Positions 7,630 to 62,161 of a stretch of 64,000 bases of DNA are shown in pieces. Position numbers and translations under genes: made by a program. Origin of the DNA: Trichosphaerium sp. ATCC 40318 (lineage: Eukaryota; Protista; Tubulinea); contig JALMLS010000225.1 of the NCBI GenBank assembly GCA_038496445.1, forward strand, positions 1 through 64,000, in the 5' to 3' direction. Below the pieces are notes generated by a model, which was given only the letters and a program-made list of their open reading frames with translations, was not told the origin of the DNA and made no database searches. The stretch's first letter is position 1. Each line of letters begins with the position of its first letter.

Positions 7630-9152
7630 ATGGGTTTACCAGGTGTTTCAGTCGAACAAGTAATCACGTACTATTGTGATAGCCACAAGGAAGAGTTTAG
7701 CAAAATCGTTGTAAAAGAACGTGAAGTGTTCATAAATCAAGTTGAAAGTATCTTAAACGTTGCAAACAAGACACTTTTACAACAATTAGACCACTTTCTC
7801 CTTAAACGCTGTCATACAACCGATGATACAACCAAGCAGCTCGCAATACACTCTAAAGACACAAATTTGGCCAATACGCAAACCTTGGACTCGGACACGA
7901 AGATACCGAAACACAAACAAACAAGACAGTAAGAGAGTCATATTTTTCTTCAAACAGATTCTGTACTAACAATTGGTAATTGAACAGGAAACAACCAAGT
8001 CCATACAAAGTAGAGAACATTCTCAATTTCCCTCCAGAGGTTATATCGACGATTATCCGACATACTGAAGCCAAAACAAGATTCGCTGTTGCTCAGTCAT
8101 GTCATCTAATGGCTGATGTCATCCATCATGTTGTTGGATACAAAAAGGTGTTTGTTTCTTCAATTCCAGATATTCTAAAGATCAGACAGTACAGCGGTGT
8201 GATGAATAACAGCATTATCACAATGAATGTTGAAAACAACACTTTGTTTTCGTTGTTGGCTGGATGTCGATACATTGATACTTCGTTCAAAAGAACCTCA
8301 AAGGAACATAGAAAAAGTGGTGCTATCAATGATAATGATCTGAAAGCACTCTCAGGAGTACACTATATTTGTCTTTATAGCTGCAAACACGTGACAGATG
8401 AAGGTATCAAGTTACTTGCAGGTGTTCATACGATTGATCTGCTTGGAACTTCAGTGACGGATGATGGAATCAAAGCACTTGCAGGTGTTCACACCATTGA
8501 TATTGCATATTGTGCCAATGTGACGGATGAAGGAATCAAGGCATTAAAGGGAGTACATGCCATCAACCTTATTCGTACCTCAGTGACAGATGAAGGTATT
8601 AAAGCACTCGCAGGAGTTCACACCATTCGTCTTAATAGGTGTGCAATATCAGATGATGGTATTTCAGCGTTATCAGGTGTTCACACTATTTTTCTTTATG
8701 AGACTCCAGTTACTGATAAAGGTATCAAAGCACTATCAGGTGTTCATACTATTCATCTTGGAGGTACTTCAGTGACGGATGAAGGTATCAAAGCGCTCAA
8801 AGGAGTTCATACAATCGACCTTTCTCGTACTGTGGTCACTGATGAAGGTATTAAAGCACTTGCAGGTGTCCATGCCATCAATCTTGATAGTACTTCAGTG
8901 ACAGATGAAGGTGTTAGAGCCTTATCAGGTGTCCATACAATTGGCCTTGGTAACTGTGATCAAATTACAGATGAAGCTGTTCGATCATTAAAAGGACTGT
9001 ACGCTGTTTCACAATCTGTTATTAATCATAAGCATCGTGAGTTGGGAGATGCAAAAGGTGTTTATTTGATGAATTATTTTATTGAATATTCTTTGGGACA
9101 GCCAGATCTCACCGTACATAGCAAATTTCATAGGACTGTACGCATTTACTGA
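7630..9152 (+). CDS. F-box-like protein with about 10 22-aa leucine-rich repeats (2 exons: 7630-7928, 7988-9152)
   Basis: Intron 7929-7987 (GTAAGA...TACTAAC...AACAG) joins track ORFs 7588 and 7980 in frame; F-box-like ILNFPPEVISTIIRH; repeat consensus LAGVHxIxLxxTSVTDEGIKA. Confidence 0.85.
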
Positions 9153-12611: not shown

Positions 12612-15600
12612 ATGGCGGATGAAAGTACAATAGAGCTTACGGTACGTTGTTTCCGTTTGCCTCCGTTTTTCACCTTATTTGCAATAAGGTTACTATACGT
12701 GAGGCTGAGTCGTTACCAGCGAAGGACTTGAACGGTTACTCTGATCCTTACGTCGTTTGTTACACTACGAATTCGGGAGACAAAGATGCCAAAAAGTCGA
12801 AGAAGTTTAAAACTGAGGTCATTGAGCGTACACTAAGCCCTGTGTGGGATGGTACTAGTGATTAGACTTCTAATTTGTTTAATTAACTTGTTGAGCGTTT
12901 AGGTACAAAAAACAACGTTTACCAAGCGTTCATTACTCCTGTACGTTACTTTTATAGAAAATCAACAAACAGTGTCACACAAACTAACAAAACTAGCTTC
13001 ATACGCTTCATATTCAAATCTACGACAAAGACACGATAGGCTCGGATGAGTATATCGGAGGTACACATAATATAACCTAAATGACAACCTAACTTTCAAA
13101 AAAGGTATCATATGGGAGTACGACGATCTTCTCAAATTGAAAGCTGGTTCACGTTGGTATGCACTTCACGAATGGAAGAAAAAGGCTAAAAAGGTACAAT
13201 ACAACGTCTCTGGTGGGATGGAGTGTTTGAAAGATTCGCTTGCGCTAACAGATGGTAGGGTAGACAACTGGAAGGTAAACTCCGTTTACGTCTTGATGGC
13301 GTCGGCCCAAGAAAGTCAAATTGGGCTGCATCCTCCGTACGATACTCATTACTGTTGTATTCATTATCTTATATCATCTTAGAGCGAACCATTCAGCTTA
13401 GAGCAGGTGTGCAACATTCCTGATATTTGACTTTTTTTGCAATTTAGATGATTTATTTTGACTTTGTTTGTTCTAGCTCGTTGCTACTGGTAAACTAGAC
13501 GTCAATAAAAAGATGGTACAGTTCTTAGCCAGTGATTAAAACTTACTTTACTGTTTTTTTAAGAAACTATCACAAGTGAAGAAGACTTTACAAAGGTTGA
13601 ACTTAAAGATGATTAAAGGCGAATTCAAAGCTCAATTTGAGGTTCCAACAGAATGACAAATGTACCCGTTAATATTACGTATTAGGAAGCTGATACCGAT
13701 GGAAGTGGAGCTTTGGATTTCGGTGAACTTCAAACACTATACAAACGTTTAACTGTAATTTCTTCATTTTTTTGTAAAAGTCTGATTGTGTTACTGTTTA
13801 GGTTCGTGTTGGCATGTCTGCTATCTTTAATAAGTTGACAGGCAAACATGCTGCACTATCTACAAAAGCGTTTTTAGAGTTCTTGGTTAATGAGCAAGGT
13901 GTAAGTCACACGTTTTTTTGAAATGGTGTTTTCGTTTTTTTGACACATTGCAGATGTCAAAAATGACACTTGAAAAAGCAAAAAAGATCGTAAAGAAGTA
14001 TTCAACTGGAACAAGTAAAAGGTACTACTACAAGTATAATAGGAAGCTCTGTATGTTGTTAATATATTGTTAAACTCATAGGCTTTGTGTGGATGGTTTC
14101 CAGGCGTTTATGACTTCAAAGGATAATGACATTCATAAGCCTAAAACAAAGAAATTGCACATGCCAGTATGCTTTCTCTCTGTTTGCTTGTAATTTTTCT
14201 TCTCTTACTTACACAAAAACCAAGATGGACAGGCCAATTAGCGAGTACTGGATCGATTCTTCGCACAATACTTATCTTATTGGACACCAATTGCGTACGT
14301 TTCGCAAAAATAGGCATTCTGTAGACACGCGCTTTAGATGGTAAGAGTTCAACAAAGGCTTATATTAGCGCCCTTTTACGTGGATGTAGATGTGTAGAGT
14401 GTAAGTTTGGTCTTGGTTTGTACCTTAACTTACACTTACACCGTAGTGGATGTTTGGGATGGCGATAAAGAGCCGATGGTAACTCACGGACATACTTTCG
14501 TATCGGATATAAAATTCCGGGATTGTTGCAAAGCTATTTCTGAGAACGCCTTTACTACTTCAGAGTACGTTATTGCGTTTTATGACAACTTGGAAGAATG
14601 ATGTATATAAATTCATTTTCTAAGGTACCCTGTGATTCTATCACTTGAGGTTCATTGTCACGAATCTGGGCAAGAAGATATGGCAAAGATTATGACGTCA
14701 GTTTTCGGCAAGCAGCTTGCTAGTGATTATATCAAGGGTAAGTTCAATATATCAACGGTTAAATGTTTAAGAATAATCTTTGTTCTTCAGATGGTAAAGT
14801 ACCAACACCAGAGAGTTTGAAAAATAAGATTCTCATTAAAGCCAAACGCCCTGACATTCTCAGTGGCACTGATAAAGTACACTGTCTTCATATAACATGC
14901 CTTGCGCTAACCCTTTCTCAAGTTCTTCACCGATATTGATGACTATTCTGGAGATGCAAATGTACGCAGACAGGGCTTTTTTGACCTTTTATAATTTGTA
15001 ACAAGCTTTATCAAGGATGTCCGTCAAAAAGTTGACGACGCAGTTCAAGACATTAAAAATATCCAAAAGCTTATGCCTAAGACAATCAATACTTCTCTAG
15101 GTTCACTAGTGCGAAGTACGTTGTTTTTAGCACATATTTACCCATTTTGTTGTTTTGTAGAGGTTGGCTACTAACACGTTTGCTTCTAGTCCCAGCTGTG
15201 CCTTTCAAGAACTATAAATACTCTGCCAGTGCGTCTAATATTGTATGTTTCTGTACTTATAGTATCCCCTTTTAGAGGAACAAGCTAAGCCGTATATGAT
15301 TACTAGTTTCGCAGAAGGAAAAGCTACCGATATGATTGCACAAAAACAGTTTGTGCCGTAAGTCTTTGTTCTTTAGTTACTTTTTGTTTTCTGTGCTCAG
15401 ACTCGATTTTTAGGTGGTCCCAGACTCAAATGTCTCGTATATATCCTAAAGGCACACGTATTGGAAGCTCTAACTATGGACCAGTTCCATACTGGGCCTC
15501 TGGGTGCCAAATTGTAGCCTTGTATGTCCTCTGTATTATCTTTTTGTACTCATTTTTTATCCAGAAATTATCAAACTTCTAGCCAACCTATGTGGGAAAA

Positions 15601-16972: not shown

Positions 16973-17848
16973 ATGGAGCACAACACCGCAAAGCGGACAT
17001 GCCCGTCGATATTGAACACGTCTATGAACAAACAACTCCCAACAGAGATCATAATGTGTATTTTGGAATACAATACCAACAAGGCGTCTATTTATACGTA
17101 TTTAACGCTTTCTAAGCAATACGAACAGTTTATCAAATCACGTGTGCCATATTGGAGACATATGTACATCTCTGTGTACATCGCGGCCTACAACAAGGGT
17201 GGCTACATTTGTAACAATGGTATCTGGGATTTTTTTGAAGACTTTGAAATACTTGGAGATGAGGACGTTTTCAAAGTAGCGGCTACTGGCGAGTACGAGA
17301 TAAGTCCTGATGTGTGTGTGGCTTTAGAGGAAGGACAGCTTTGGATAGAAGGTGATTTAAAGTGCTGGAAGGAAAGATGCGATAATCAGAAGATAGCTAC
17401 GTCACTTGCTGATCATTTGGATGGATATGAATTCCCCTTCTACAACGAGAGTGATGTACCAAAGTTTATGCCATTTTATGTTTGTTTAAAACAGGATGAC
17501 AAGGAAGAACATGCAATGTTGAACATTTTCAAGAGATTCACGTTCGTAGATGATGACGACATAGAGAACTTTAATGAAATAGACTTGAAAACATTCTCAG
17601 AACACGTAGAAAATCCTGAGGTTTTTAAGAGTCTCAAAGAAGTTGTAGAAAAAAAGATGTGGGGATTTGAAAAACTCACCTGTCTTGAGTACGATAGTGC
17701 AGATATTAGGTGGTATCTTGTTCATAGTATATCACCTATATCAAGGGCAGTTATAGGTGTTTTTCTTGTTCAGGACAATTCGTGTGGTGCTGGTCCTTGG
17801 AACGAATACTACCTGCAAAAGAAGAAAAATGGATGGAAGCCTACCTGA
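16973..17848 (+). CDS. Intronless F-box-like protein with uncharacterised acidic C-terminal domain
   Basis: 291-aa uninterrupted ORF; N-terminal KQLPTEIIMCILEY...YLTLSKQY resembles an F-box. Confidence 0.7.
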   Translation: MEHNTAKRTCPSILNTSMNKQLPTEIIMCILEYNTNKASIYTYLTLSKQYEQFIKSRVPYWRHMYISVYIAAYNKGGYICNNGIWDFFEDFEILGDEDVFKVAATGEYEISPDVCVALEEGQLWIEGDLKCWKERCDNQKIATSLADHLDGYEFPFYNESDVPKFMPFYVCLKQDDKEEHAMLNIFKRFTFVDDDDIENFNEIDLKTFSEHVENPEVFKSLKEVVEKKMWGFEKLTCLEYDSADIRWYLVHSISPISRAVIGVFLVQDNSCGAGPWNEYYLQKKKNGWKPT

Positions 17849-18503: not shown

Positions 18504-19637
18504 TTATATATGCACTGTAGTCCCCTTTAAAGTTTCAACCCCTTTTCTTGTAACACGACTATTATATGCGCAAATATTGGATGCACCAGCCAGTGCTGTT
18601 ATGCCTTCATCTGTTACTGAAGTGTTATCGAGGTAAATGGTATGAACTCCAGCAAGCGCTTTAACGCCTACATCTGTTACTGAAGTGTTATTGAGGTAAA
18701 TACTATGAACTCCAGCGAGTGGTATGACACCTTCGTCTGTTATTGAAGTGTTGCCAAGGAAAATAGTATGAACCCCAGCGAGAGCTTTGACACCTTCATC
18801 TGTTACTGAAGTGTTGCCAAGGGAAATAGTATGAACCCCTGCAAGTGCACCAACACCTTCATCAGTTACTAAAGTATTATTGAGGAAAATAGTATGAACA
18901 CCTCTCAGCGCTTTGACACCTTCATCTGTTACTGAAGTATTGCCAAGGGAAATAGTATGAACCCCTGCAAGTGCACCAACACCTTCATCTGTTACTGACG
19001 TATTGTCAAGTATAATAGTATGAACACCTTTCAGCGCTTTGACGCCTTCACCAGTTACTGAAGTGTTGCCAAGGTCGATGGCATGGACACCAGCAAGTGC
19101 TTCAATGCCTTCATCAGTCACTGAAGTGTAGCCAAGGTGAATATCATGAACTCCAGCGAGTACTTTAACACCTTCGTCTGTTACTTGAGTTCTCCAGAGG
19201 CTAATACTATGAACTCCAGCAAGTGCTTTGACACCTTCATCTGTTACTGAAGTGTTGCCAAGGTGAATAGTATGAACCCCAGCGAGAGCTTTGACACCTT
19301 CATCAGTCACTGAAGTGTTGTCAAGGTGAATGGTACAAGCACCAGCAAATTGTTTGATAATATTGTCATCAACACCAAGTGCAAAGGATATTGTTGTATA
19401 TTTCAGAATACCAGGGTGTTTTACAGCTGATTTTGCTTGTCCTAATGTTCTAATCATAATGGCGTGGTATCCAACAACCTCATGAATGACAGAAGCAAGG
19501 AGATGACACGTTTGACAAGCATTAAAGCGTGATTTGGTTGTATGACGCAAAATATGTGCTAATATCTCTGTAGGCAGTCGCAATAAGCTTGTACTGGAGA
19601 TACTATCGATTTTACAACGTTTTGAGGTAGAAAGCAT
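18504..19637 (-). CDS. Intronless F-box-like protein with about 12 22-aa leucine-rich repeats
   Basis: LLRLPTEILAHILRH...CQTCHLLASVI; tandem 66-nt units encoding LAGVHxIxLxNTSVTDEGVKA; paralogous to 7630-9152. Confidence 0.88.
   Translation of the reverse strand: MLSTSKRCKIDSISSTSLLRLPTEILAHILRHTTKSRFNACQTCHLLASVIHEVVGYHAIMIRTLGQAKSAVKHPGILKYTTISFALGVDDNIIKQFAGACTIHLDNTSVTDEGVKALAGVHTIHLGNTSVTDEGVKALAGVHSISLWRTQVTDEGVKVLAGVHDIHLGYTSVTDEGIEALAGVHAIDLGNTSVTGEGVKALKGVHTIILDNTSVTDEGVGALAGVHTISLGNTSVTDEGVKALRGVHTIFLNNTLVTDEGVGALAGVHTISLGNTSVTDEGVKALAGVHTIFLGNTSITDEGVIPLAGVHSIYLNNTSVTDVGVKALAGVHTIYLDNTSVTDEGITALAGASNICAYNSRVTRKGVETLKGTTVHI
18590..19345. repeat. Coding tandem array of 66-nt LRR units
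   Basis: Recurring core ccttcatc(t/a)gttactgaagt every 66 nt. Confidence 0.9.
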
Positions 19638-20235: not shown

Positions 20236-21503
20236 TTAACGGCGAAGCAATCTAATTCTGTCTTGTTGTTGACCAATTGATCTCTTCCTTTAAAATCACG
20301 TGAGTAAAAAAAAAGTGCACTCCTTTTCATTGTCGTACTTGGTGACACATGGAGTTGAAGGATCAGGTAGATTGTATCCAGGATAAAAGGCACCTTGATG
20401 AGAACCGGGAGACTCAGGGAAGTAATCTCGAGCACCTAATATGTGGTTAAATCAAAACTGTGCGGTTTTTTTTGGTTAATCTTACCTCCCATCAAAGCCA
20501 CAGAAAAAAACCCCATACTATTTTCAACATACAACAAATTTTCATCAATACGATCAATTATTACAGCTGCAGGATTGATTGCACTACCAATATTCGTAAC
20601 TGTGGTGAGGTCTAGCTGACAAGGAGCTGCGCCTAGATCCGCTGTAGGAAATGAAGCGATTCTACCCATCATACTGTCATCCTCATATAAAACATACGAT
20701 GTACCAGGAGCAATCTCAACTAAACAATTCATTGTTAAGGAGGCAAAGGTTTAAGTCAACAAACAAAAAATATACAACTTCATTTACCACTGCTAGGTTG
20801 ACCACCTGTCATTGCACATGAATCAGTAGTAGTAATCATACATGGATCCATTGAAGTATCAATAACGTTGGTGTAAAAGCACTCTCCATCGTAAGTAATA
20901 AAAGTTGTTTCATCGATGAATCCACCAACTGAAGTCAAACCCAGAAGATCACTACGTCTTATTGTGGCCGAACATAATAAAGTATTATCCTGCGATTTTA
21001 CTTGAATTATATCTGCGCTTACGTCTATCAATAGAATGAAAGATCCATCAACAGCAGGAACTGCATAAAAAACCGGTTAGACTAACTAACTAGTACGGTG
21101 AACTACCAGCGCTAACGCCACTTATCAAAGTAGCGTATTATTACCGGAGACCGTTTTGGAAAACAAAGAAACGGTACGGCCTTGGCAAAACTTCGTACAT
21201 AAAAGAGGGAATGAAATGCCAGCATAGGAAAAAGTTACGCCAAAATCTGCATCTACAGAAGAAAATTAGTAGCTATTAATCACGTGCTTGAGATTTTTGC
21301 TTTAGTTAATACTTTATGTTTTGGACAGCCTTATAAATATGAAAAGTAAGTGTACCATTTCCGAACATTGTATCTGTTTCCCTTACATTTACCGCCATTG
21401 CTTGAACATCTGGATAGATATGAGCTACTGGTCTAGTCTGACAGGCAGCTAGGGTGGCTATAAGTGCCAACACAAGTAATCTCGAGTAAAGCAGCTGTGA
21501 CAT
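20236..21503 (-). CDS. Secreted hypothetical protein (multi-exon)
   Basis: Signal peptide MSQLLYSRLLVLALIATLAAC; exons match track ORFs 21306, 20780 and 20436; inferred end ...PCVTKKRSIGQQQDRIRLLRR*. Confidence 0.6.
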
Positions 21504-37771: not shown

Positions 37772-39219
37772 ATGGAGGGTGTGGCACTTGATAAGAAACA
37801 ATTACCACTGACACTAGATGCCATTGATTATTACCCTGGAGAAGCGTATAAACACTTATTTGCCTGCGCCGCATATCAACTTGAAGAAAGCACACAACAG
37901 AGAAAAGGTTTACTGACTTTTTGGAATACAGCAGAAAATACTCTCGAAAAGGTGCATGAGGTAACGTCTCTACCTGGTATTCTTGATTTGAGTTGGTTAG
38001 CGCGTTTCTTTATTTCAAAATTGTAACTGTCACACAGGCATGATAATTTATTGGCTCTGGCGCTATCTTCTGGAGAAATACGCACGTACAGCGTAGATAA
38101 ATCAGATAAATTTGAACCCAGCGTAAAGCATAACCTAGCTTCCCCGTTTGGCGACGACATGGTATGTATACGCCTGTTACGCATAATCTAACAGTACGCA
38201 GACGCTTTCAGTTGGCTGGAACTCTTTAGGCGGTATTTGTGCGTCTTACCAATCGGGTGGTTTAGCTGCTTGGGATGCCACCATGGAGGTACCATTAGTG
38301 CTATATTTTCACAACAAACCACTAATCATTGCCAGAAATGCGTTTGGAATAAGCCAAAAGCGCATGGCTTCGAAATATGGGCGTCACACTTTGATGCTAC
38401 GGACACAAACATCATATACTCTGGTACGAGGCAGAGGACAACCATTTCTTCTGTTTTTCCTTTTTTTCGACCCAACCACTACGAAACTTTTGCTTCTATC
38501 TCATGGATACGGCCATACAACCATGAAAACTCCGTGTCTCTTTCCGAACCGCGAAGATAAGCATGGTATGGCCCTGCCAGTACTTGGGTCCGTGAGGACC
38601 AGGGAACGTAGGGTGCTGTATTCATTTTGCTTTTTTCTTTTTTATGCTGCGCAAGCTGATGTTCGTTTTTATGTAGGTGCTGATGATTGTCGCTTGAAGT
38701 TATGGGATACTCGAATAGGTGGTACTCCAGTACATGTCTGTAAGCACTATGATGTTGGAGTTACAGCTGTTAATTCTCACGCTGAGCTGCCAAACAGATT
38801 CGTTGTTGGAAGGCAAGTTTTATTTATTACTGTTTTTGTTAACTTGTACAATAGTTACGACCAAACTGTTACTATGTATGATAGAAGAACAATGAAAAAT
38901 CCATTGTCTAGTATTAGCCTAGGTGGCGGTGTTTGGCGTATTAGATGGCGGCCTGGCGCTAGTGTTGGTAAGTACTCGGTAGTAAGAGAAGGTAATAGCT
39001 AATTGATTTTTAGATGCTCTGGAGCTTGGTGTTGCTGCAATGCGTTCTGGGTTCCATGTTATACAACTAAACAAAGATTTGACAACTATAACAAGAAAGG
39101 GTGGATTCAAACATAGCGATTTGGCTTATGGTATTGGATGGGATCCAAATGAATCTAAAACTATTGCTACTTGTTCATTTTATGACAAGACACTTGGTTT
39201 ATGGTCTTGTAAATTTTAA
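37772..39219 (+). CDS. DPH7: Diphthine methyl ester hydrolase (WD40, WDR85)
   Basis: AHGFEIWASHFD...IIYSGADDCRLKLWDTR; HYDVGVT; GSYDQTVTMYDRRTMKNPL; LGGGVWRIRW; AAMRSGF; HSDLAYGIGW; ATCSFYDKTL. Confidence 0.9.
38505..38623 (+). rRNA. 5S rRNA: 5S rRNA gene nested in a DPH7 intron
   Basis: 119 nt; begins GGATACGGCCATAC; helix I GGAUACGGC/GCUGUAUUC; CCGAAC loop; box A-like GAAGATAAGC; loop E AGTA/GGAAC; followed by TTTT terminator. Confidence 0.93.
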
Positions 39220-39829: not shown

Positions 39830-40439
39830 ACATTCTTGGGCTTCCGCCTTCGAATGCCATTTTTGCTAGATCTATGTCATAGCTAGATATCATTATGATA
39901 TTTGATACGCCTGTAGGTGGGTAGTAGAGGTCTTCTACCTGTGGGTCCCAAGTCAGAGCGTATGTGTAGTCTGGATTGGTATTAACCAAGATGCTTTTAG
40001 GGACTGTGACCGTGACTTTAATCACTAATGGTCTGCCCAGGAGAGAATTGTATTTTTTACGAGCGTACTTTCGCACTGCTCGGAGTAGTCTTGACATGTC
40101 AAGCAGAAGTATAGATATTGTAGTTTAGTATTCGTATGCTTCCACTAGATAAAAAATCCATTTTCCTTTTAACCAAGTAATTTCTTGTTGCAAAAAAATT
40201 GTGGTTTTGCCACGGTTTTCGAGAAAACCAGTCCATTGCGTTACATGGTAATAGAAGCATATCAAGTCCAATCGATAGCATATATACGGATTTTGATGCT
40301 GGGTTTTAAGATGTGGAGTTATGAAGTAAATCGGGATTGTAATGTTGAAAAAAAGTGAAATTTGAAAAAGACTTAAAAGCAACTCACAGCGGTTTCTACG
40401 TTCCCGTGTGGTATCTTCCACGCGTATTTTGAGACTCAT
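39828..40439 (-). CDS. Hypothetical protein or disrupted gene
   Basis: ATG 40439 with a TATA-like TTTTAAATATA upstream; plausible GTGAGT...CAG intron; frames do not join cleanly near 40099; no domain recognised. Confidence 0.3.
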
Positions 40440-40527: not shown

Positions 40528-42897
40528 TTAATGTAAAGCAAGGTCGTTTTGATCCTTAAAAAGGTCGATCTTTCTGTTGTAGCTTCCCTCATGCGCTTGT
40601 CGCTCAAAACATGCCTCGATTTTATAACGTAAATGAATAATAGCGTTGGTGACGGTTTGAACCAGTTACCTGCCTTTTCGGTCAAAAAAAACGTGATCGT
40701 ACCGTTACCGATTTTCTGTTGACTTTTGCTCTCAAATAAGCTTGTATGTATTATGAGAGTAGTTGTATAACTGCAGTGCCACTGTAACCTTTTTTGGCGC
40801 TCTTTCAGTTCAAAATAGCATTTGCCTTTCTTTTGTAGACTCTAACACATTAGAAAGAGCCACAACGCGTACCTCTTAGATTCAAGACACTTTAAAGCTC
40901 TTTTGAGCTGGTTATGCACCAACAACAGCGATCACAGTTTAAAACTCGTAACCATGACTCACCAGCTTTTTGCGACCCATAGGATACAAGCGCTGTCCGT
41001 GATCTACATGCTGACCGGTTTACGCCTTTGGCAACCGTTCTTATACTGCCTGGAGGATTAATGACCCTCAGTAGACTTTGGTTTGCTCACAATAGATAAT
41101 GCGCATGATCAAATCCTTAAGCCTTATTTCAGATAATGTTGTGCCTTATTAGATACCTGCTTTTGTAGTTGATTCATCAGTAAGGCCTGAAGACATACTG
41201 TCGGATGGGAGCTACATTCGCTAAGAAACAAAAAAGAGGTAAAAATTAGGTATTATTTTTAGTGTTGCACAATCAGGTCACGTTCCAGCGTTATCTCTCC
41301 GTGATCAGTTGTTTCCATCTTAAAAAAAAAGGTACACGTTAGAAACAGGTGACTGTATTAAAGTGTAGCAACCCTGACGGTAGTTTACCAGCTATTGCGT
41401 AGTCCTAAACATGGTTTGAAGGGAGTTTATAAAATATTAGGAAACAAAACCTGCACAAAGACCATGAACCAACAAACAGTAATATTAGGTGCAAAAAAGA
41501 GCTTCATTTAACCGACTGAAGTTAATATCATACAGTCCATATTCTAATTGTTGCGAAGATTAATCCAGCTAGTACTGTCCACTCTATTGCAGTTCCAAGA
41601 AGCGCTATAGTAATGAGTAAGAAATGACTAGAACGAATAAAGGAAGTACCTATGGCGCCTATCATGAGGTTGGCAATTCTTCTTGAAGTGAGAAGCCAAA
41701 AAGTCACTATTGGGAATAATATCGGGCCAAGTGGACAAAGGCAACCAGTCAATAACCTATCAAGAGAATTAATTACGACAGCTAGGAGGATGTTTTTCCT
41801 AACGTACAAAGTTAGTGCGAAAAGAGAAACATGTGATTTATCTATTCTTGTTGAAACGGATGGCTGTAAAAGAGAACTTAGCACTCATTCCAAAAAATAT
41901 TTTGTTTACTTGTATTGTTGCGTATGCTCCAGCATCGTTGGTCTCAACCAATTGGTACATTTCTTCTGGATCTTCAAACGTGTCTTCAGTGCAAGATAGT
42001 ATGAGACATATTAAGAAAACTACGAGAGAACCTGCAGCGGAAGAACCTGAACTTGTTAGGAAGTTATTTAAACATTTAAATAAAATCGGCTTCTTAAGTT
42101 TGCTACTAACCTACGAGTGGAATGCCACGTTGGATATCTACTGCTGGATCCAATTCGTCTTTCATATCGTACTGAAGCATGCGATCAAAGCCTTGGAAAA
42201 CTAGAAGAACATACGCAGTTCTAGAAGTAAAAAGGGTGAAAAACTATTTCAGAACAAAACAAAGTTCAGGAGAAAATGAACCAACTTACGCTACAACAGC
42301 CCAATAAACGATAATGACAAGAGATACGTATACAGATGCACGTCTATCACGAGCGAATAGAATAACGCCAATTCTAAAAAAAACATCAACAAAACTTTTT
42401 TTCTCATGATCACGTGATTTTTTCGTTGTTGCTTACAAGATGATATGGAGTACCGCCATCATAATATACGAAAATATAAGGCCGAATTGACCCATCTTAG
42501 TGAGATTACAATGAACCGCTTTGTGTGGTTCATACATCTTGCAGTTTGGAAATTCGTCATACTCCATTTTATTGCAAGTCCATTCAACTTCATTTACTCC
42601 CTTTGTGCAGTTTTTGTACTCCAGAACGCCTATTTCATAGCGAACGAATCTAAAATTATTTATTTAGTTCATTTACCACGCTTTTGATTGTCCACGTGCG
42701 TAGGACTGTCTCAAAAACTTGAAAATTCGCGAATGACAACCAAAACTCGTTATTTCTCTTTACAACGCGTACCCATCGTCTATAGGTCCTTCTATATGTA
42801 CTAATTCAAGAAATACACTTCCCGCAATCCCTCCAATGATTAAGACGGATAATATAACGACCCACGCCTTCAGCAATCTGCTCAACCAAGGATTCAT
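40528..42897 (-). CDS. Multi-pass membrane protein with claudin/PMP22-like N-terminal half (multi-exon; 3' end uncertain)
   Basis: MNPWLSRLLKAWVVILSVLIIGGIAGSVFL (TM1), Cys-containing loop YEIGVLEYKNC...WTC...C...HC, further TM exons at 42290-42500, 41990-42050 and 41530-41780. Confidence 0.5.
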
Positions 42898-43836
42898 GCG
42901 TATCTCAGTAAACTCTAAATCGTTTGGAGAAAAGTTGGGACCATTTTCAGTTTGCTTCCTTCAATTGACAAAATTGCTTTCAGCGCGAAAGGTACACGTG
43001 CAGCTGATATCACGTAATACGAAGAGCGTAGATTTACGAGAAAGCATACCTGGGCTTAAAAAGAGCAAACGTTATACATGGGAACTAACGAATCAAACAT
43101 CAGCAGTGGGTTATTATCAATATGTAATTACGTGATATTTAGCGGTCTCAACCAGTGCGTAAGCACGCTCAACAAAAATACAAATGCAGTCTTTAAATCC
43201 CTTCTTCAACGAAGCGAATGGTTTAACTGTTCGTACATAATCACGTGCGCTCAGTTCCTATTTACTTTGATAAGTATAGGATTTATTGTTAATTTTGTGT
43301 TAGGATTGGTACTGGTTTTGTGGATGTACTATTTGATGTGCTATCGCTTGGAATCGAAGATGCAGTACAAAACGGAGGTTGGACTAGAAAACTCATTCAA
43401 CAGTAGCAACTTGTAAAACACAATGGTAAATGTAGACATCACCTGTTGTTTCATGCTATGCGATCACTCAGTACATTGTTTGCTAGCATCCAAACCCACG
43501 TACCTTAAAGCACATGTGTCAACACACGCGCCTTTATCAAAAGAAACGTCTTCGTAATGCTTTTACTCTGCCAGTAAATATTTAGTAGTGAGGTGTCCAA
43601 TCATGTAACGATAGTTACTCTTGACAATGTCTTTAAACCTTCATCTGTTATGTTTGCGCTCTAAAGTGGATTTCATACTCACCCAGTACTTCGTACACTC
43701 GTATATTCAAGCATTATTGACAGTACTGGTCTTGACCAGCTTCTGGTGTAGCTGTAAGCTAATGATTACTACAAGCGGCAATCAATAGAGCGCCTCCGGT
43801 TTGTCGTTTTGTCTTATTCAGCAAAAAAAAGAAAAA

Positions 43837-43965
43837 GATGAGTATCGAATTAAAGTGCAATCCTCTACCTCAAAGTGCCCGCTAACTCTAGCAGGCGAAG
43901 AGGTAGAAAGCAGAATTACGTTTCGTCAGGAAATCTAAGGTGACTACACCTCATGGCTCATCGAT
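43837..43965 (-). ncRNA. Unidentified structured small RNA gene, copy 1
   Basis: Stems GAUGAG/CUCAUC, GAGGUGUAGUC/GAUUGCACUUU and UCUACCUC/GAGGUAGA; T-run terminator (A-run 43823-43836 on +); AACCACAA about 60 nt upstream. Confidence 0.7.
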
Positions 43966-44300
43966 ATTGTAGACACATCATACTTGTTTTAAACACAAAG
44001 TATCTGATAAAAAAAAAGATTGTGGTTTGAAAAACAATCAAATTTCTTTTAGTAGGATTAAACAAAGAACGACAACCTATTCCAGTACTTGCAATATAAT
44101 ACACTCATATCAAAAGCACTACATGGTTGTAGGCAACACAAAAGTAGAAAAAATTGATGACGTCAGCAGTCTATACAACAGTTGTCAAATTACTAAAAAC
44201 AGTATTCTGCTTAACCTGCGTATGTACACTTTCTCATAAATAGTGCTCATGTTAGTCCTTGGTAATACTAATCCAACAAATAGAAATTCGAGAGTTTTTC

Positions 44301-44340
44301 AACCACAATCTTTTTATTATCAGATACTTTGTGTTTAAAA
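44301..44340 (+). promoter_or_regulatory. Upstream element AACCACAA (about -60) and TATA-like GTGTTTAAAA (about -25) of the ncRNA gene
   Basis: Both motifs occur at equivalent distances in all three copies (also 43987-44027 and 49034-49072 on the minus strand). Confidence 0.6.
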
Positions 44341-44361
44341 CAAGTATGATGTGTCTACAAT

Positions 44362-44468
44362 ATCGATGAGCCATGAGGTGTAGTCTCCTTGGATTTCCAA
44401 ACGAACCGTGAAATCTGTGTTTCTACCTTAACGTAGAAGGATGAATACTCATTAATTCGATACCCATC
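44362..44468 (+). ncRNA. Unidentified structured small RNA gene, copy 2 (shortened hairpin)
   Basis: Homologous to copy 1 in inverted orientation; GGAUUUC/GAAAUCU and UUCUAC/GUAGAA hairpins; followed by TTTTTCTTTTTTTT. Confidence 0.65.
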
Positions 44469-44662
44469 TTTTTCTTTTTTTTGCCTAGCAAAAAACGTAG
44501 GAAAGACAAACGCTGTAGCGATCAGTTTGAGGTGGACATACTTGTGTCACACGCTTGACGTGCGTCGTTATAACAAATAGCAAGATGCGTCAGTCTTCAC
44601 TGAAACTTAACAGGAAAATACCATATTTTGAAATTATAACATCAAAAAGCGAATAAATCGCC

Positions 44663-47600
44663 ATGAGCACACCTAAGAAGGTTAAAGCGATGCGTCGCCA
44701 GAGGGGAGAGCAGATGGTAACGTAACCTGTTAACACAATTCGTTAAAGTGATCGTAGGTGCTTGAAATCAACGCTATCTTCCCTCAAGTACCTTTATCTC
44801 AAATTATTAAAGCAGGTATGTACAGCAACACGTATATACGCGCATACGCGTCTAGTACCCTCAAAAGCGTTCATCTAAGGGTTAAACTATTATTAACGAA
44901 GTGTAATCCACAACTCTAACCGCTGGCGTAGTGAAAGGTTCAGACCTCAATAAAGAGCGTGCTGTTGCTACATTACTCCAAGACATTGACTCAGACATGG
45001 CAAAAGCGGAGTACGCTCCTAAAACGTTATAAACGAACATAATAACGCAATTACAGCACCACACCACCAAAGGTTACAAAACCTGATCCAAAACCAGTTG
45101 TACCTATCCCTGAGCCAAAAATATCAACGAGAGCGTCTCCAGACGCAACAAGCACCCTGGAGAAGGGTATTAAAAGTGTGGCAGCAATTCTACCTCATGT
45201 TCCAGTTTCCCGAATTATCGAAGCTTGTACGCCCTTGTCAACAACCAATTCTACGAGCTAAAAGGTATTTATTAGTAAAACAAGCTAAAGGAGACTCAGA
45301 ATTAGCAATTTTAAAAATCGTTGAATCTCCTGACTTTGAAGACGCAGATATTGATCCAGAGGAGATCCAATCAGGTACACAATATACTAACACATATACC
45401 CCAAGTTTGTCTTACGCATGTGTTAGCTTCTCCTTCTGAAAGTGAAGAAGAGGTGTACAGTGATGAAGGTTTCTTTGCTAACGAATGGTTCACTGATAAA
45501 CCGCTTCTTGATCTATCACCAGAGTATCAACCGGATCTTTTATCTCTGATGTATCAAGAACAAGCTGATGAAGAATTAGCACGTCAATTACAGGAGGCAG
45601 ATAGTACGTTAAAAACACAAACAAGCGAAAAGCGGTTGTTCATTATCTGAATAACTTTAATTACCAAAACGAAAACTAAACGTTTTCTCTTTGTAGATCG
45701 TGAATATCGTCATGAAACTACACCATTACGTGCTCTTCCATTTTATAATGCTAGACAACGTAAAAGAAATAAAAGGAACAGGTATTATGAGCACAAACAT
45801 TACAGTGCAGGTACGAACAAAAGAGCTCGAAAGTTCTCTTTAATGGGCTTAACAATTTCTAGGTGGTGCTTATTCTAGTGTACCTCGTATTGTAGTTGAC
45901 CCTAACTTGGAGAGGTTCTTAAATGTTCAAGCATATAATAACGCAGCCAAACTCACAAACGCGGTTCCTGGAGGGTACTAATTTGTAGTTTTTTGTTTAT
46001 TATTTTTCTTGCTTTTTTCTCATTTTGCTAAATGTCTTTTTGGTCAGACCAAAGAAGGTTTTTAAACGCCGGCGTATTACCATGGGTAGGCGCTTAAACC
46101 TACTTCAACAAAAACTTGCAAATGAGTGCACTTGTACAAGTGATAATCATAAACATAGCCTAAAGTACGTCGATTGCTAACACGTGTATTTTTAATTATT
46201 TTTAGGCATCCTGGTGAAGGAGATGTTAATTGGTATCAAAATACTTTACAAAAGATTTTGGACGATGCACCTCGTGATGTCATGGATATTGACACTTCTA
46301 ATTGTATGAACATGCAAGCACAAGAGCTTGAGGATCTCGTATCAGTATTCGGTAAAGAGATGACTATTTCACGTTGTTCTCCACCAATCGTTCAGTTCAA
46401 GCTTTTCGTTCATGAAAAGTATATGATCTTCCTTTGTTTTACACTTCCTGTTGATTACCCAAATTCGCCACCACATATCACTATCCGTCGATTTGGTATT
46501 GCTACAGTACCTTCAAATGAAACTATGAATAAGCTCAAAGCATTATTGGATAAGAAAGCAACAGCTGAACCTGGAAAACCAATCATCAAAGAATTGGTTG
46601 GAATTTCAAAGACATTCTTTGTTAAATTTCCAGCTGTCGCTCAAGAAGTCGTGCGTATTATCAATGCTATTCCTCAAACTAACCGCGTATGCTTTAGTAC
46701 GAATTCAAGGTTAATAACATGCCACCTGAGGAAGGTATGGCTATGTCTAGACTGAAGAAATGGCATTTTCTCTTTGACCTTCTTCCACCCACTGATGGTC
46801 ATAATTCCATGATTCAATCTATCGTAGAATGTCGTACAGCTGTAGGACTTGAGGTACGACATTCTTTTCTAACGAACAGATAGTAATAATCCACTGTAGG
46901 AAAGCGATAGCGTTTACTTTGCGATTTTGCGCCAATTCGGTTGGAACAGTAAACAATTCATTGAAGAATACGATTCTTGCAAAAAGAACAAGACTCTTGG
47001 AAAATTTTTGGACGAACTTGGCCTTGTAGTATACTCCAAGGAAAGTCGTAGAGATATTGCTTTATTCTCTGCTCCTTCTACATCTACAGTTGAATGTCCA
47101 AGTTGCCTTGATGATTGTGATCCTAAAGATGTTATTTCTTTGGAGTGTGGACACTCTTACTGTATACCTTGTTGGAAACAGTACCTTAAAGTTGGTATTA
47201 AAGAAGGTATGAGTACATCAAAGTCGTCAAAAACCATCAACTAATCTCTTTGCCAGGAAAAGTTTTGCACTTTTGTCCAGCTTACAAGTGCTCTTGTCAA
47301 TGTTCTTGGCCTGTCATTGCTCGTCTTGCTGAACCTGATGATTGGGCTAAGGTACTAATACTTACGATTCTTTTGAATGCTGTAGAAAAACAGGTTTTAG
47401 CTCACGTGATTGTTTTAGCTCATGAGATATCTGAGAAATGATTGGTGTGAGAGTAATAGATTAAATGCTTTTTGTCCAAGTCAAAAATGTCAACACGTTG
47501 TTACTGCAAAACGATTATACCATGAAGTTGTTTGTAAATGTGGTAACGCATTCTGTATGGCTTGTGGTAATAGAGCGCATTATCCAGCAGACTGCAAGCA

Positions 47601-48699
47601 ATTAGAATGGTGGATACGAAAGAACCAAGAGTAAGTACAAGAAACGGATTATGACTGCGTTTGCCTTGTGGTGACTGATGATATCTTTAGAGAGCGTACT
47701 CATGATGATGAAGATGATGTGAAATCTATTAAATGGCTTCTTAAGTTCACTCAAGATTGTCCTGAGTGTGACTCACCTATTCAGAAAAATGGTGGTTGTA
47801 ATCACATGTCATGCCGTAAATGCAACTATCAGGTATTACACGAACAATTCTTCACGTGGAGTTTTGTTTTCACGTGCTGTTTGTTAATCTTTTTTGATGT
47901 TTTAGTTTTGTTGGATATGCTTGGGTAAATGGACTGGAGGTAGCCACTATAACTGTAAAAACAAGCCTCAAAAGCGAGATCGTATGCTAGAAGAAAGAAA
48001 TGAGCGAGATTTTGATAAACTCAGTTTCCACCAGTATTATCTCCTTTTCTCTAATCTAGCAGATGGTAACGATCCAACTACTATTGGACATGCTATAAAA
48101 ATGGCAAAAACCGTACGATTTCATAGCACTTGACACAAGATCAAGCGAAGACAAAACTTATTTTTCTGCCTTAGAAGAAATTATCAGTTGAAGAAACGCG
48201 TAAGGTTTACGCTGCTGGTATGGATCTTATTATGGTACGTTGTGTTTAGATTATTTATTATGGTTTTTGGATACTTATTTATATGTGTTAGGGAAGGAAT
48301 TTGATGTTGAGTATCTGCATAGCTGGTATGTTTGATCAAAAACTAGGACTTAAGATAAAGCCACTTAAGAAGTTTCTTAAAATTATTGCGAATGATGTAT
48401 CTTTCTTGAGTTCAAGTTTATACGCTCGAAAAAAGTTTTGGAATATCCAAACAGTATCAGGTACGTCATCACACTTCAAATACATAATGCAAACAATGAA
48501 GAACAAAACCCTGACAGTTGTTTTTTTAACTTTTTTTGTTTTCTTACTAATTCTTCTTTCAGCTGGTTCTGGTTCCTTGACTCATGGTATTTCTCTATTC
48601 CATGCAAAATACTCAAACTATAGAAAAGAAAACGAAGAGAAACGTGCTTTTATACTTGAGACTATGGATATGTCCGGTAAAAAGTCTTCTTCAGAGTAA
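44663..48699 (+). CDS. Ariadne-type RBR E3 ubiquitin ligase with N-terminal CUE-like, UIM-like and RWD domains (multi-exon)
   Basis: INAIFPQVPLSQIIKA...ERAVATLL (CUE-like); QEQADEELARQLQE; RWD QAQELEDLVSVF...FTLPVDYPNSPP; RING1 CPSC...CGHSYCIPCW; IBR; RING2 CPECDSPIQKNGGCNHMSCRKC. Confidence 0.9.
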
Positions 48700-48883
48700 A
48701 CTCATTGTCTTAAATCAAATAACAATAAATACAGTTTACCAGCTCGTTTCTTAGCTTAATATCAAGCTGACCAGTATAAGAACATTTCGATAGTTGTATC
48801 AAGAACATACAGGCTACGTGAACTACAAAATACAAAGTTTAATTCAGAATTGAATTTTGGATTAATGGCAACTGTTACAAAAA

Positions 48884-49013
48884 GTGATGAGTATCGAATT
48901 GAAGTGCAATCCTCTACCTCTTAGTACCTTCCAATCCTAGTCAGGTTAGAGGTAGATAGTAGAATTACTTTTTGTCCGGAAATCTTAATGACTACACTTC
49001 GTGGCTCATCGAT
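48884..49013 (-). ncRNA. Unidentified structured small RNA gene, copy 3
   Basis: GAAGUGUAGUC/GAUUGCACUUC (pairing preserved despite changes versus copy 1); UCUACCUC/GAGGUAGA; T5 terminator; same upstream motifs. Confidence 0.7.
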
Positions 49014-49520
49014 AAAGATAGATATCATTGATCTTTTAAACACAAGACAAAGGAAAAAAAAAGCTTGTGGTTTTGAAAATTAAACTAATTTCTACTGTTG
49101 GGTTGGATAAATGATTTACTGTATAGTGTAGCTCAAGATCAAGGTTACAGCTTAACTCTTAATCTTATTCAATTCAGAGAAGATAGCTTGAATAAGGCCA
49201 GTAAACAGCATTGCTTTTGCCATCAGTGAAACAGTGATCGCACAAGAACCTTTAACGCAGATGCTCCGAATACTTATGGAATTAGTTTCACACTATGGCT
49301 CATGGTATGCGATAGCTCATAGCAAAACTCATTGAGAAACTACACTTTTCTTTTTCCTAATACCTCAACAAACTACTTAAACCAACTTGGTGTATTTAGC
49401 AAACGTTGTTAACTAATAAGTTTAATCATTTAATTACTTACAAGATATCCCACGTGATATTCAAGGCTCATTTGGTTCTGTCATTTAAGGTTTTATTTTG
49501 TATTTAATTTGCTTGATGCT

Positions 49521-50972
49521 CTAGTCATTTTCTTCATCTGTTTGGTATTCTTTGAAGCCAAATATCTTCTTACCCAATTCAGTAAGCTCTGGCATTTTGT
49601 GTAGAGGTTGCTCCCAGTTATCACCTCCTCCTGTTGAGTTGCCACTCGGAAACCAATGAGGAAGGGTACCGTTTTCAACGGCTTGTTTAACGTCTTTCCT
49701 ACCTCTAGTATCAGAAAAGTATAACAAGGTTGAAGAAGAAAGGCACCTTTGTTCTACGCGGAATTCATCATCGTCACAAGGAATAAAGTTTATAAAGCAC
49801 TGAAAGCGCCAAGAGTCTGATTGGTTAACTTTAGAAGCATGTGGAAGACGGCTACTCCATATAACCATATCTCCTTTAGACATAGGGACTTCAATCGCTT
49901 TACAACATCAGGTAAAAACAATAAGACTTAAAGGTAAGTTGCTCACCTCTATTAGCGATTGCTTTTGAGTCTGCAAACTGCGTGAAGTTCTCATACCTAT
50001 CTGGAGGATCCATTTGATCTGTGGATGAAAATTCACCTTTCTAGCGATGGCTTGAGATTAAAGAGAATGAAGGTAATTGTACCTCGTATCTTTCTCGGTA
50101 ATCTCGCAGAACATCTAGTTTGTGAAAACCTAATCACGTGATATCAATACTTGTTATGTTAATGGACAATTTTACATACCAGGTATACATGTGAATCCAC
50201 CATGACCTGCTGGGCAGTCAGATAAGCAAACACTGCTTTGAAACTTTTGTTCTGTTATAAACCACAGATTCAAGTCATTGTGAAACTCAAAGTATGCATT
50301 AAGTTCAGGGAAAGTCTTCTTCTAAATAAAATATTAATCACGTGCTAGCAACAGTTAAGTTGCACCTTTTTTTCACCATCCTCCTCAACGTAAACGTATT
50401 GAGGTGGCTTCATTGACATCCAATCAAGAGCAAGAGTCAACTTATGAGTTCTATACAGTTGTGCAAAGACACTGTAAAGCTCAGGTGTTTGTCTTATCTT
50501 ATAGTATGCAGGTAAATGCCATATATCTATAAACCCAACCTTATTACCTTTCCACACCTAGGCTTTCTTTAGCTTGGAAGATCTCAATATTTACTTGGTT
50601 AATTACCTTCTTTGTCCATGTTTTATAATCGTCAGGATCAAGTCCGAGCAGGGAAGCTCTGTCGAAAGCTTGTTTAGTCATTTCGTCACAAAGGGATTCT
50701 TTTACAACTTTTTTAATCACGAGGTATCCATTTTCTAGTATATTTAGGTCGTAACGTGTGGCGGTGACGTACTGTCAAAGAAATCAAGCTGTTCTGGTGT
50801 AAATCTGTACAATTAGTCTAAATATTAGATTGAACGAGTCTTACTTGTATGATAGCGCGTCTGGGTGTGGTTTTAACTGTTTTTCTTCTTCTTCTGTCAA
50901 TCGAAGTGTTTCTTCTCGTTCATGTTTTCGTAAAAAGTCTCTTTCTTGCTGGCTAAGCGATTGATTACCCAT
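49521..50972 (-). CDS. Phytanoyl-CoA dioxygenase (PhyH)-family Fe(II)/2OG oxygenase (multi-exon)
   Basis: ENGYLVIKKVV; HND (HxD); FQSSVCLSDCPAGHGGFTCIPGFH; KGDMVIWSSRLPHAS...WR; N-terminus MGNQSLS. Confidence 0.85.
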
Positions 50973-57811: not shown

Positions 57812-58690
57812 TCAATTCTCATCATAACGTAGTGATTCTGGTATTAATTCTCCATTGTTGTACCAAACATCATAATGTCCCTCTCGTTTACCATTCACAT
57901 AATGAGAGAGCTCTGCTAATATCCCGTTTTCATGCCAGTTCTTTACCTCTCCTTCCAGTTTATCATTAACATAGTGATAACTTTTAATTAATTGACCCTT
58001 CTCATTCCACTGTCTGTACTCCCCTTCGAGTTTATCGTTCATATAATGGCACTTGATGTAGCACCCTGGCGTGAATTTTACAAGCCATATCTCATGTGTT
58101 CCTTCTTTTTTATCATCGACATAATTACGTATTTCGTGTAACTGTCCATTTCCATACCACTTTTTGTACTCGCCTTGTTTTTTGCCATTGATATGATTAC
58201 ACAGTTCCTCTAACTGTCCGTTTTTATGCCAACTCTTATACTCTCCTTCAGCTTTACCATTCATATACGTAGCTTGACGCAATATACTACCATCAGGTCT
58301 GTATCGCTTGCATTCTCCATGTCTTAAACCATCCTGATACATTATTTTACAATCAACATTGCCATTTTTGTGCCATGATGTAAATAAGCCATGCTCTTTA
58401 CCATCTTTGTTGTAAAACACCGAATACTTTTCACCGCTGTTGTACCACATTTCGCAAGTACCATTATTGCGCCAATGCCTCTTAACTCTTCCATTGTTGT
58501 GCCAGGAGATCCATAGACCCTTTTTACCCATTGTTTCAGTAAAATGTGTGCGTACTGCTACTGTTCGCGACAGAGTGTGCCTATAAACATACTTAAAAGG
58601 GGTCATCGGTATTTAAACGCACAGTTTCGTAAAAGATTCAGCAGTAAACTCGCTAATGTAGCATAGAGTTTCTGTAGGGAGTGAGAGCAT
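57812..58690 (-). pseudogene. Intronless F-box-like / MORN-variant (YwqK-like) repeat gene with an in-frame stop after the F-box
   Basis: ATG 58690 gives MLSLPTETLCYISEF...CV*IPMTPF (TAA 58613-58615), in frame with the 264-aa MORN ORF (GKxEGEYKxWxxNGQL repeats). Confidence 0.75.
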
Positions 58691-61240: not shown

Positions 61241-62161
61241 TTATTTTGTCGTTATGTCACATACTTTTTTATCATCAACGAACATACACTGTTTGCATAA
61301 AACTCCAGTTTTATCCCACCTTTTGTACTCACCATTTTTCTTATTGTCTATGTACGGGCATTGTAACTTTAATTGTCCATTGTCATACCAAAATGTCTGA
61401 ACTCCGTTTTTCTTACCATCAACATAGTCAGTTATTTCCCAGATTCGTCCATTATGAAACCAGGATTTATCCTCACCAACTTTCTTACCCTCAACATACT
61501 TACACTGTTCCCTGATTTGTCCAGTATTATACCACGCTTTACAGTCACCAGATTTCTTACCATCAACATAGACCTCATGTGAAATCAGTTGTTGTCCTTT
61601 GTAACTCCACCGCTTGCAATCACCATTTTTCTTGTTATTGGCGTACATTGTATAAGAGCTGAGTCGTCCGTCGTGCTCCCAGATTTTTGTTTCACCATTT
61701 TTCTTACCATTTACAAATGTATGTTCAAATTTAAGTTGTCCACTAGGGTACCAGTCTTTGTACTTACCATTTGCCTTACCATCAATATAGTTGCATTGTA
61801 CTCTTAACTTTCCGTTATTGTACCATCCCGTTAATTCGCCGTTCAGCTTGCCATCGTTGTATGTGCAAAACTCCTTGGGCTGTTCATCCATATACCACAA
61901 TTTGAAGTCTCCACTCTTTCTACCATCAACCAAGTTGCATTGTGTTTTGATACAGCCATTTTTGTACCAAGTCTTCCAAATACCATTTCTTCTAAGGTCG
62001 GAATTGTAATGCGTGTTGATTGCAGCTTGTTTCGATACAATATGAAACTTATTAAATATTTCAGCATCAAATGTACACAGGTAGCGTTGAATATCACGTG
62101 GAATATCTATTATCGTGAGTCGTTTAATATTGTCAAGACGTTGATTTGGCGATATTTGCAT
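61241..62161 (-). CDS. Intronless F-box-like / MORN-variant (YwqK-like) repeat protein
   Basis: 306-aa ORF; IIDIPRDIQRYLCTFD...FHIVSK then about 10 24-aa units YxDGKKNGxxKxWYxNGQL. Confidence 0.88.
   Translation of the reverse strand: MQISPNQRLDNIKRLTIIDIPRDIQRYLCTFDAEIFNKFHIVSKQAAINTHYNSDLRRNGIWKTWYKNGCIKTQCNLVDGRKSGDFKLWYMDEQPKEFCTYNDGKLNGELTGWYNNGKLRVQCNYIDGKANGKYKDWYPSGQLKFEHTFVNGKKNGETKIWEHDGRLSSYTMYANNKKNGDCKRWSYKGQQLISHEVYVDGKKSGDCKAWYNTGQIREQCKYVEGKKVGEDKSWFHNGRIWEITDYVDGKKNGVQTFWYDNGQLKLQCPYIDNKKNGEYKRWDKTGVLCKQCMFVDDKKVCDITTK

Follow-up and report, generated by a model that had tools for sequence, protein, structure and literature searches.

Three homologous units on contig JALMLS010000225.1 of Trichosphaerium sp. 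ATCC 40318, within the stretch of 64,000 nucleotides (nt) analyzed here (positions 1 to 64,000, the window), are probably paralogous genes, two of them intact and one degenerate or divergent, for a previously undescribed structured RNA of ~125-130 nt, which would be transcribed by RNA polymerase (Pol) III in an amoebozoan-type nuclear genome and would serve as a protein-binding scaffold. Transcription would be directed by an external promoter of the Dictyostelium upstream sequence element (DUSE) type, with AACCACAA near -60 and a TATA-like box (TGTG-TTTAAAA) near -25. It would start, most likely under Pol III, at the conserved AUCG/GAUGAG and stop in a run of five T residues (T5) immediately past the terminal helix, leaving a 3' oligo-U tail of the kind bound by the La protein. 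The RNA is predicted to close on itself by a 6-bp terminal helix, followed by a loop and a second helix (P2), with a variable apical part. We infer that a protein-binding platform is formed by the terminal helix and the internal loop, both of them invariant, and that the RNA acts as a stable ribonucleoprotein (RNP) scaffold. Y RNAs, vault RNAs and dictyostelid Class I RNAs are built in this manner, with a terminal stem, an adjacent conserved unpaired motif and a variable remainder.

Three homologous units and their flanking motifs

The units are listed with their fold statistics and their scores under R1, a covariance model made from the three copies.

43832..43965, minus strand: copy 1, candidate RNA-coding unit (AUCGAUGAG...CUCAUC plus U5), the best folder of the three (minimum free energy -45.0, z-score -4.78, R1 152 bits)
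44362..44473, plus strand: copy 2, candidate RNA-coding unit, a divergent or degraded variant (z-score -0.39, R1 104 bits)
48879..49013, minus strand: copy 3, candidate RNA-coding unit ending in CUCAUC AC U5 (minimum free energy -37.1, z-score -3.48, R1 150 bits)

The 24-nt 5' motif ATCGATGAGCCAYGARGTGTAGTC occurs exactly three times in the window, against 0.00 occurrences expected (43942-43965, minus strand; 44362-44385, plus strand; 48990-49013, minus strand), and R1 recovers copies 1, 3 and 2, in that order of score. Neither the motif scan nor R1, with filters on or off, finds a further copy in the 64-kb window. Copies 1 and 2 form a head-to-head divergent pair, and copy 3 lies 5 kb off, beyond a gene for an RWD-RING-IBR (RNF14-like) protein. 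The homology between copies 1 and 3 extends only from about -100 to the T-run; outside these limits a global alignment with 300-nt flanks shows background-level similarity. From the promoter through nt 48 of the RNA, copy 2 is 94% identical to copy 1. Mutations have accumulated in its 3' half, where the hairpin has lost ~22 nt but still pairs. Copy 2 is probably a degenerating or divergent paralogue, the promoter and 5' half of which have been homogenised with copy 1.

The motifs that flank the units are distributed as follows.

44041..44047, minus strand: AGAAATT of copy 1 (alignment)
44020..44027, minus strand: AACCACAA of copy 1, DUSE-like, with its start 62 nt before the 5' A of the RNA (motif scan and literature)
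43987..43998, minus strand: TTGTGTTTAAAA of copy 1, TATA-like, -33 to -22 (motif scan)
43823..43836, minus strand: T-run of copy 1 (T5 C T8), directly past the terminal helix, presumed Pol III terminator (sequence reading)
44283-44289, plus strand: AGAAATT of copy 2 (alignment)
44301..44308, plus strand: AACCACAA of copy 2, DUSE-like, with its start 61 nt before the 5' A of the RNA (motif scan)
44329..44340, plus strand: TTGTGTTTAAAA of copy 2, TATA-like (motif scan)
44469..44482, plus strand: T-run of copy 2 (T5 C T8) (sequence reading)
49087-49093, minus strand: AGAAATT of copy 3 (alignment)
49065..49072, minus strand: AACCACAA of copy 3, DUSE-like, with its start 59 nt before the 5' A of the RNA (motif scan)
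49034..49045, minus strand: TTGTGTTTAAAA of copy 3, TATA-like (motif scan)
44158..44165, no strand assigned: perfect TGACGTCA palindrome, resembling a cAMP-response element (CRE), within ~2 bp of the midpoint between copies 1 and 2 and at about -195 from each RNA start

In all three copies AACCACAA begins 59-62 nt upstream of the conserved AUCG, and TTGTGTTTAAAA is present, its TTTAAAA at about -28 to -21 and 24-26 bp downstream of AACCACAA. AGAAATT is likewise kept at about -80, and the T5 run begins 0-2 nt past the terminal helix (CUCAUC or CCCAUC) in every copy. A comparison of copies 1 and 3 shows diverged spacers in the promoter but retention of AACCACAA, TTGTGTTTAAAA and both ends of the RNA. 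In dictyostelids, DUSE has the form [AT]CCCA[CT]AA and lies ~60-63 nt upstream of non-coding RNA (ncRNA) genes, with a two-C variant in several groups (PMC7919456; PMC3188802); in Dictyostelium it is used by Pol II genes as well as by Pol III genes, including those for small nuclear RNAs (snRNAs) (PMC7919456). AACCACAA is this two-C form, at the proper distance. The analogy becomes concrete because the named protein relatives of the window belong to Amoebozoa.

The 5S rRNA gene of the window (38505-38624, plus strand; 93.7 bits with the Rfam model) ends directly in TTTT, followed by two T6 runs; therefore, Pol III termination at T-runs has an internal example in this genome. Upstream of the 5S gene lie CAACCAC at about -33 and ACAACCA at about -65, without a clean DUSE at -60. 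Paired DUSE-like and TATA-like sites of the form CCACAA-N-TTWAAA are found at two further places, 40167-40206 on the minus strand (a good AACCACAA plus GGTTAAAAGG) and 40860-40896 on the plus strand. Neither was retained as a gene of this kind, as neither is followed by a recognisably structured RNA or by one ending in a T-run; the site at 40167-40206 falls within a 104-amino-acid open reading frame (ORF) with no Pfam match. The TGACGTCA palindrome occurs twice in the 64 kb, the other occurrence being at 14693, and is absent at the matching distance from copy 3. It could possibly be a distal element shared by copies 1 and 2.

An earlier, sequence-only reading of this DNA had proposed three homologous units with their own promoter and a T-run terminator, and had likened the promoter to DUSE. 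The homology is borne out by the motif count, the alignments and R1. Motifs at near-fixed distances in all three copies agree with the claim of a promoter and terminator belonging to the unit, and the DUSE analogy is apt, the position and two-C form of AACCACAA conforming to the literature and the relatives of the window being amoebozoan. That reading had also named many genomic copies with target-site duplications and no covariation as the pattern that would speak for a mobile element; within the 64 kb, the model built from the three copies returned these units and no others.

Predicted fold and pattern of substitution

The RNAalifold consensus consists of a terminal helix (P1, GAUGAG/CUCAUC, 6 bp), an asymmetric internal loop with CCA(Y) opposite AAUUCGAUA, P2 of 11-12 bp, a junction containing an invariant GAUUUCC, which is unpaired in all three copies, and a long hairpin with a kept base, UCUACCUC/GAGGUAGA. 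Compared with dinucleotide shuffles, the folds of copies 1 and 3 are much more stable (z-scores -4.78 and -3.48), and none of 200 shuffles is as good. The reverse strands fold worse, with z-scores of -3.70 for copy 1 and -1.57 for copy 3. Under the consensus 88.9% of cells are paired, against 36-50% with the 3' partners slid. Four of the 11 P2 pairs of copy 1 are G.U, and P2 of copy 3 is fully paired by Watson-Crick or wobble pairs.

The substitutions between copies 1 and 3 are placed very unevenly. Of the 65 positions in P1, the internal loop, P2 and the hairpin base, 4 differ, as against 21 of 60 in the junction and apex (Fisher p=8e-5), and no copy departs from the other two in the CCA and AAUUCGAUA strands of the loop. 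The evidence for constraint is this placement of substitutions together with the stability of the fold, not covariation. P1 and P2 hold only two changes, both one-sided (G.U to A-U and G.U to G-C), and the sole double change in the covariation table stems from the poorly aligned copy 2.

In copy 2, P1 contains an A.C mismatch and P2 three mismatches. At 44440-44468 the 3' strand of its P2, GAUUGCACUUU, has become GAAUACUCAUU, which creates a second AUACUCAU identical to the 3' terminal strand of the family; the true terminal strand of this copy bears a mismatch (CCCAUC). The second AUACUCAU may represent a shifted terminal helix, or it may be a chance occurrence.

Several observations weigh against three genes for a structured Pol III RNA. 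There are only three sequences, and the covariation among them is not significant, its score being reached by 148 of 500 shuffles. Copy 2 folds no better than chance (z-score -0.39). Copy 1 can also form a local hairpin (UGAGGUG/CACCUUA) that is incompatible with P2 and equal to it in energy (-45.0 vs -44.4 kcal/mol), whereas in copy 3 P2 is favoured over the local hairpin by 10 kcal/mol; moreover, these two copies differ by one G-C to A-U double change that suits the local hairpin and not P2, and the same holds for one C-to-U change in copy 3. Gene conversion between the paralogues could partly account for the conserved ends. The T-runs and the TATA-like box suggest Pol III, the polymerase that the sequence-only reading had proposed; DUSE is also found at Pol II genes in Dictyostelium, which leaves the assignment to these two features. 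Finally, no homologue was found outside the window in the collections searched.

The fold that had been proposed earlier, with P1, loop, P2 and hairpin, is thus the thermodynamic consensus and is significant in copies 1 and 3, with the reservations just given for copy 2 and for the competing hairpin of copy 1. The choice of strand also stands, the proposed strand folding better than its reverse in both copies. The description of the stems as covarying was overstated in view of the two one-sided G.U changes and the shuffle result, and structural selection demonstrated through covarying stems is more than three sequences can show.

The search outside the window yielded only numbers expected by chance. 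Exact-motif scans with GATGAGCCANGANGTGTAGTC returned three metagenome, four prokaryotic-genome and one viral match, none of which fits R1; the three metagenome matches lie in unrelated G+C-rich sequence without the 3' motif. R1 has no match in the two contigs that bear the nearest relatives of the carnitine acyltransferase encoded in the window, and a literature search with the RNA sequence strings found no paper. The family is known only from this window, and the negative result may reflect only a lack of close relatives in searchable collections.

Candidate identities

Which kind of RNA would these genes encode? The only Rfam 15 family to pass its gathering threshold in the whole window is 5S rRNA (38505-38624). 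At E<=10, the 5.9-kb region and slices of 131-147 nt around each copy give only unrelated chance matches (E 0.2 to 10), and ARAGORN reports no tRNA. The sequence-only reading could not match the RNA to tRNA, 5S, U1-U6, SRP, RNase P/MRP or C/D snoRNA, and no known family matches it in Rfam 15 or ARAGORN.

It is possible, though unlikely, that the units encode a highly diverged vault RNA (the partner of TEP1/MVP) or Y RNA (the partner of Ro60), beyond the reach of Rfam models centred on vertebrates and nematodes. The 5'/3' panhandle, the conserved internal loop and the variable centre would fit such an RNA, as would the length of ~125 nt, the 3' U-run and the small paralogue cluster with its divergent pair. 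There is some likeness between the conserved loop AAUUCGAUAC and a B box (GGTTCGANNCC), with agreement at 6-7 of the 9 specified positions, AATTCGATAC fitting the B-box consensus to this extent, and vault proteins are present in Amoebozoa (PMC12547018). However, neither family scores at E<=10, even on the slices of 131-147 nt. There is no recognisable or convincing A box, and the position of the B-box G53 is an A here. The RNA is predicted to have the 5'/3' stem and U tail of Y RNAs and stem-bulge RNAs (sbRNAs), but it gives no Y_RNA match, and on reading the Ro-binding helix with its bulged C (GGUCCGA.../...UUGACU) is absent. Among the 39 window ORFs scanned against Pfam, which represent 64 kb of genome, none matches the TROVE family. 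The likeness to Y RNA and sbRNA suggested by the sequence-only reading is thus retained for the general architecture and lost for the covariance model and the Ro-type bulged helix.

The dictyostelid Class I RNAs are a further point of reference. A DUSE ~60 nt upstream is found here, AACCACAA lying 59-62 nt before AUCG. A length of 42-65 nt and the 11-nt CCUUACAGCAA motif are not: the units are 107-130 nt long, and the motif is in no copy. By the criteria applied, the RNA is not recognisable as a member of the Y, vault or Class I families, although it is alike in architecture. To our knowledge, no amoebozoan vault RNA sequence has been published, and Class I RNAs are currently thought to be restricted to Dictyostelia. 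It is doubtful that the units are the first example, in a non-dictyostelid amoebozoan, of a small RNP RNA like those of the Y, vault or Class I families, be it a vault or TROVE-bound RNA or a longer relative of Class I. If it were true, the DUSE system would predate Dictyostelia and could become a tool for finding ncRNA genes across Amoebozoa.

Alternatively, the units might produce an snRNA-like RNA transcribed by Pol II, with the T-runs as an incidental part of an A/T-rich flank and AGAUUUCC as a non-canonical Sm or Lsm site. In Dictyostelium, DUSE precedes snRNA genes of either polymerase, which would allow this, and GAUUUCC is conserved and unpaired in all three copies. The 5' part also has short resemblances to U2 (AAGUGUAGU) and to the U1A loop (AUUGCAC). 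Against this, no snRNA family scores at E<=10 and a canonical Sm site (RAU3-6GR) is lacking; the T5 run lies 0-2 nt past the terminal helix in all three copies, even in copy 3 with its otherwise unrelated flank, and a TATA-like box lies 24-26 bp downstream of the upstream element. We consider transcription of this kind quite unlikely. The individual spliceosomal snRNAs (U1, U2, U4, U5, U6, U11, U12, U4atac and U6atac) were set aside, with no model match and, on reading, neither their defining boxes (for example ACAGAGA or loop 1) nor a RAU3-6GR site. The resemblances to the U2 branch-site region (9 nt) and to AUUGCAC are so short that they could have arisen by chance. We likewise discarded a 5' stem-loop like that of U4, a branch-site box like that of U2, a U1A loop and a telomerase template, as the defining partner motifs are absent on reading.

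Could the inverted repeats merely mimic RNA helices in a locally duplicated DNA element, foldback-like, similar to a miniature inverted-repeat transposable element (MITE) or a regulatory module? The terminal inverted repeats GATGAG/CTCATC and a sub-terminal 11-mer have the appearance of such an element, of which there would be only three clustered copies. Yet 4 of the 11 P2 pairs of copy 1 are G.U, which exist only in RNA and on one strand, and the reverse strand folds worse. Conservation continues for ~100 nt beyond the supposed terminal repeat, on one side only and as separate motifs, each at a fixed distance; substitutions spare the helices and the loop; and no similarity extends beyond the unit, although target-site duplications were not systematically searched for. 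Such an element is very unlikely.

A decaying pseudogene cluster from a known RNA gene, such as the 5S rRNA gene 5 kb away, is hardly credible: nt 36-78 of copy 2 align to nt 9-52 of 5S at ~69% identity (a score reached by 5 of 4000 dinucleotide shuffles) and the size, terminal helix and T-run are similar to those of 5S, but copies 1 and 3 show no 5S similarity above shuffles, three unrelated segments of the window score as high as copy 2, the Rfam 5S model is silent on all copies, and an upstream promoter of type-3-like form has been kept across diverged paralogues, unlike in decaying pseudogenes.

Four other assignments were rejected. 5S rRNA itself has no model match on any copy, and only copy 2 shows the borderline local similarity. 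A box C/D small nucleolar RNA would have to be read from the 5' end UCGAUGA(G) and a 3' side with UCGA; there is no conserved CUGA, and CCUGAC is in copy 1 only. For a tRNA or a tRNA-derived short interspersed element, ARAGORN is empty, an external promoter region of ~100 nt is common to the copies, and these are only three and clustered. A kink-turn reading of GAUGAG...UCGA lacks its defining partner motifs on inspection.

Genomic setting and comparison with known systems

The window is eukaryotic, with 34-40% GC and short GT-AG introns, and contains exons for F-box/LRR, MORN, RBR, carnitine acyltransferase and kinase proteins. The nearest named relatives of the carnitine acyltransferase exon are from Arcella intermedia, Cavostelium apophysatum and Balamuthia mandrillaris, all of them Amoebozoa. 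Copies 2 and 3 flank the following gene.

44664-48700, plus strand: multi-exon gene for an RWD plus RING-IBR-RING (RNF14-like) E3 ligase

Its introns are ~55-90 nt long, of the GT-AG type and with CTAAT-like branch sites, and its RWD and RING exons have no close relative in protein collections. Paralogue clusters of F-box/LRR_6 and MORN_2-repeat proteins occupy 7980-9152, 16973-17848 and 18504-19637, and 57812-58606 and 61241-62161. The nearest relatives of the F-box/LRR ORF are MMETSP transcripts of marine protists, at only 47-49% identity.

A 31-nt inverted repeat with 84% complementarity is found 3 kb apart, at 40048-40078 and 43153-43183 (CAGTGCG.AAG.ACGCTC..AAAAATACAA on opposite strands). 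The TAATCACGTG motif, which has the E-box core CACGTG, is repeated in intergenic DNA around the cluster, at 43238-43247, 50131-50140 and 50335-50344. A 42-nt stretch at 21324-21366 (plus strand) is 74% identical to nt 5-45 of the 5S gene of the window and may be an old 5S fragment, or a chance likeness.

The finding is a good, testable candidate, consisting of three sequences without significant covariation. If expressed, the RNA would be a new small-RNA family for a poorly explored eukaryotic supergroup, and a DUSE-plus-TATA promoter, so far dictyostelid, would work in a distant amoebozoan. The arrangement AACCACAA-N24-26-TTTAAAA-N21-22-RNA would then offer a simple anchor with which ncRNA genes could be sought throughout such a genome. 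A defined bait for the protein partner would furthermore be at hand in the invariant helix and loop at the RNA ends, and its use could link the RNA to vaults, to Ro-like quality control or to regulation of the Class I type.

Among known systems, the dictyostelid Class I RNAs (the DdR-21 family) and other ncRNAs driven by DUSE share with these units a CC(C)ACAA-type element ~60 nt from the RNA start (PMC7919456; PMC3188802), a short terminal stem formed by the 5' and 3' ends, beside which lies an unpaired motif under strict conservation, a variable interior, and several copies with T-runs downstream. They differ in length (42-65 nt, against ~125 nt here) and in the 11-nt CCUUACAGCAA motif, which is absent here, whereas the units described here have an additional long helix (P2), a long hairpin and a clear TATA-like box. 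The host also differs: it is not dictyostelid-like, with 38% GC, many introns and its nearest named proteins in Arcella, Cavostelium and Balamuthia.

Y RNAs and nematode sbRNAs have in common with the units, as predicted here, a Pol III promoter of type-3-like form, a 5'/3' stem interrupted by an internal loop, a GUG/CAC upper stem and a 3' oligo-U tail, together with paralogues that are clustered and in part divergent. Unlike these RNAs, the units have no model match and no bulged-C helix of the Ro60 type, and their loop is much larger (3-4 x 8-9 nt) and of another sequence. Vault RNAs are similar in size range, in the panhandle, in a centre that varies between paralogues and in a B-box-like TTCGA near the 3' end; three clustered genes are also reminiscent of the human vtRNA1 locus. 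The differences are the missing model match and A box, the partial B box and the upstream promoter (DUSE plus TATA) found here. As for the plant-type genes for snRNAs, 7SL, MRP and telomerase RNA, with a promoter (type 3) of an upstream sequence element and TATA, the RNA described here matches none of them and carries no telomere-template-like repeat. However, both have a CCCACA-like element at a fixed distance of two to three helical turns before TATA and a T-run terminator (PMC12133305).

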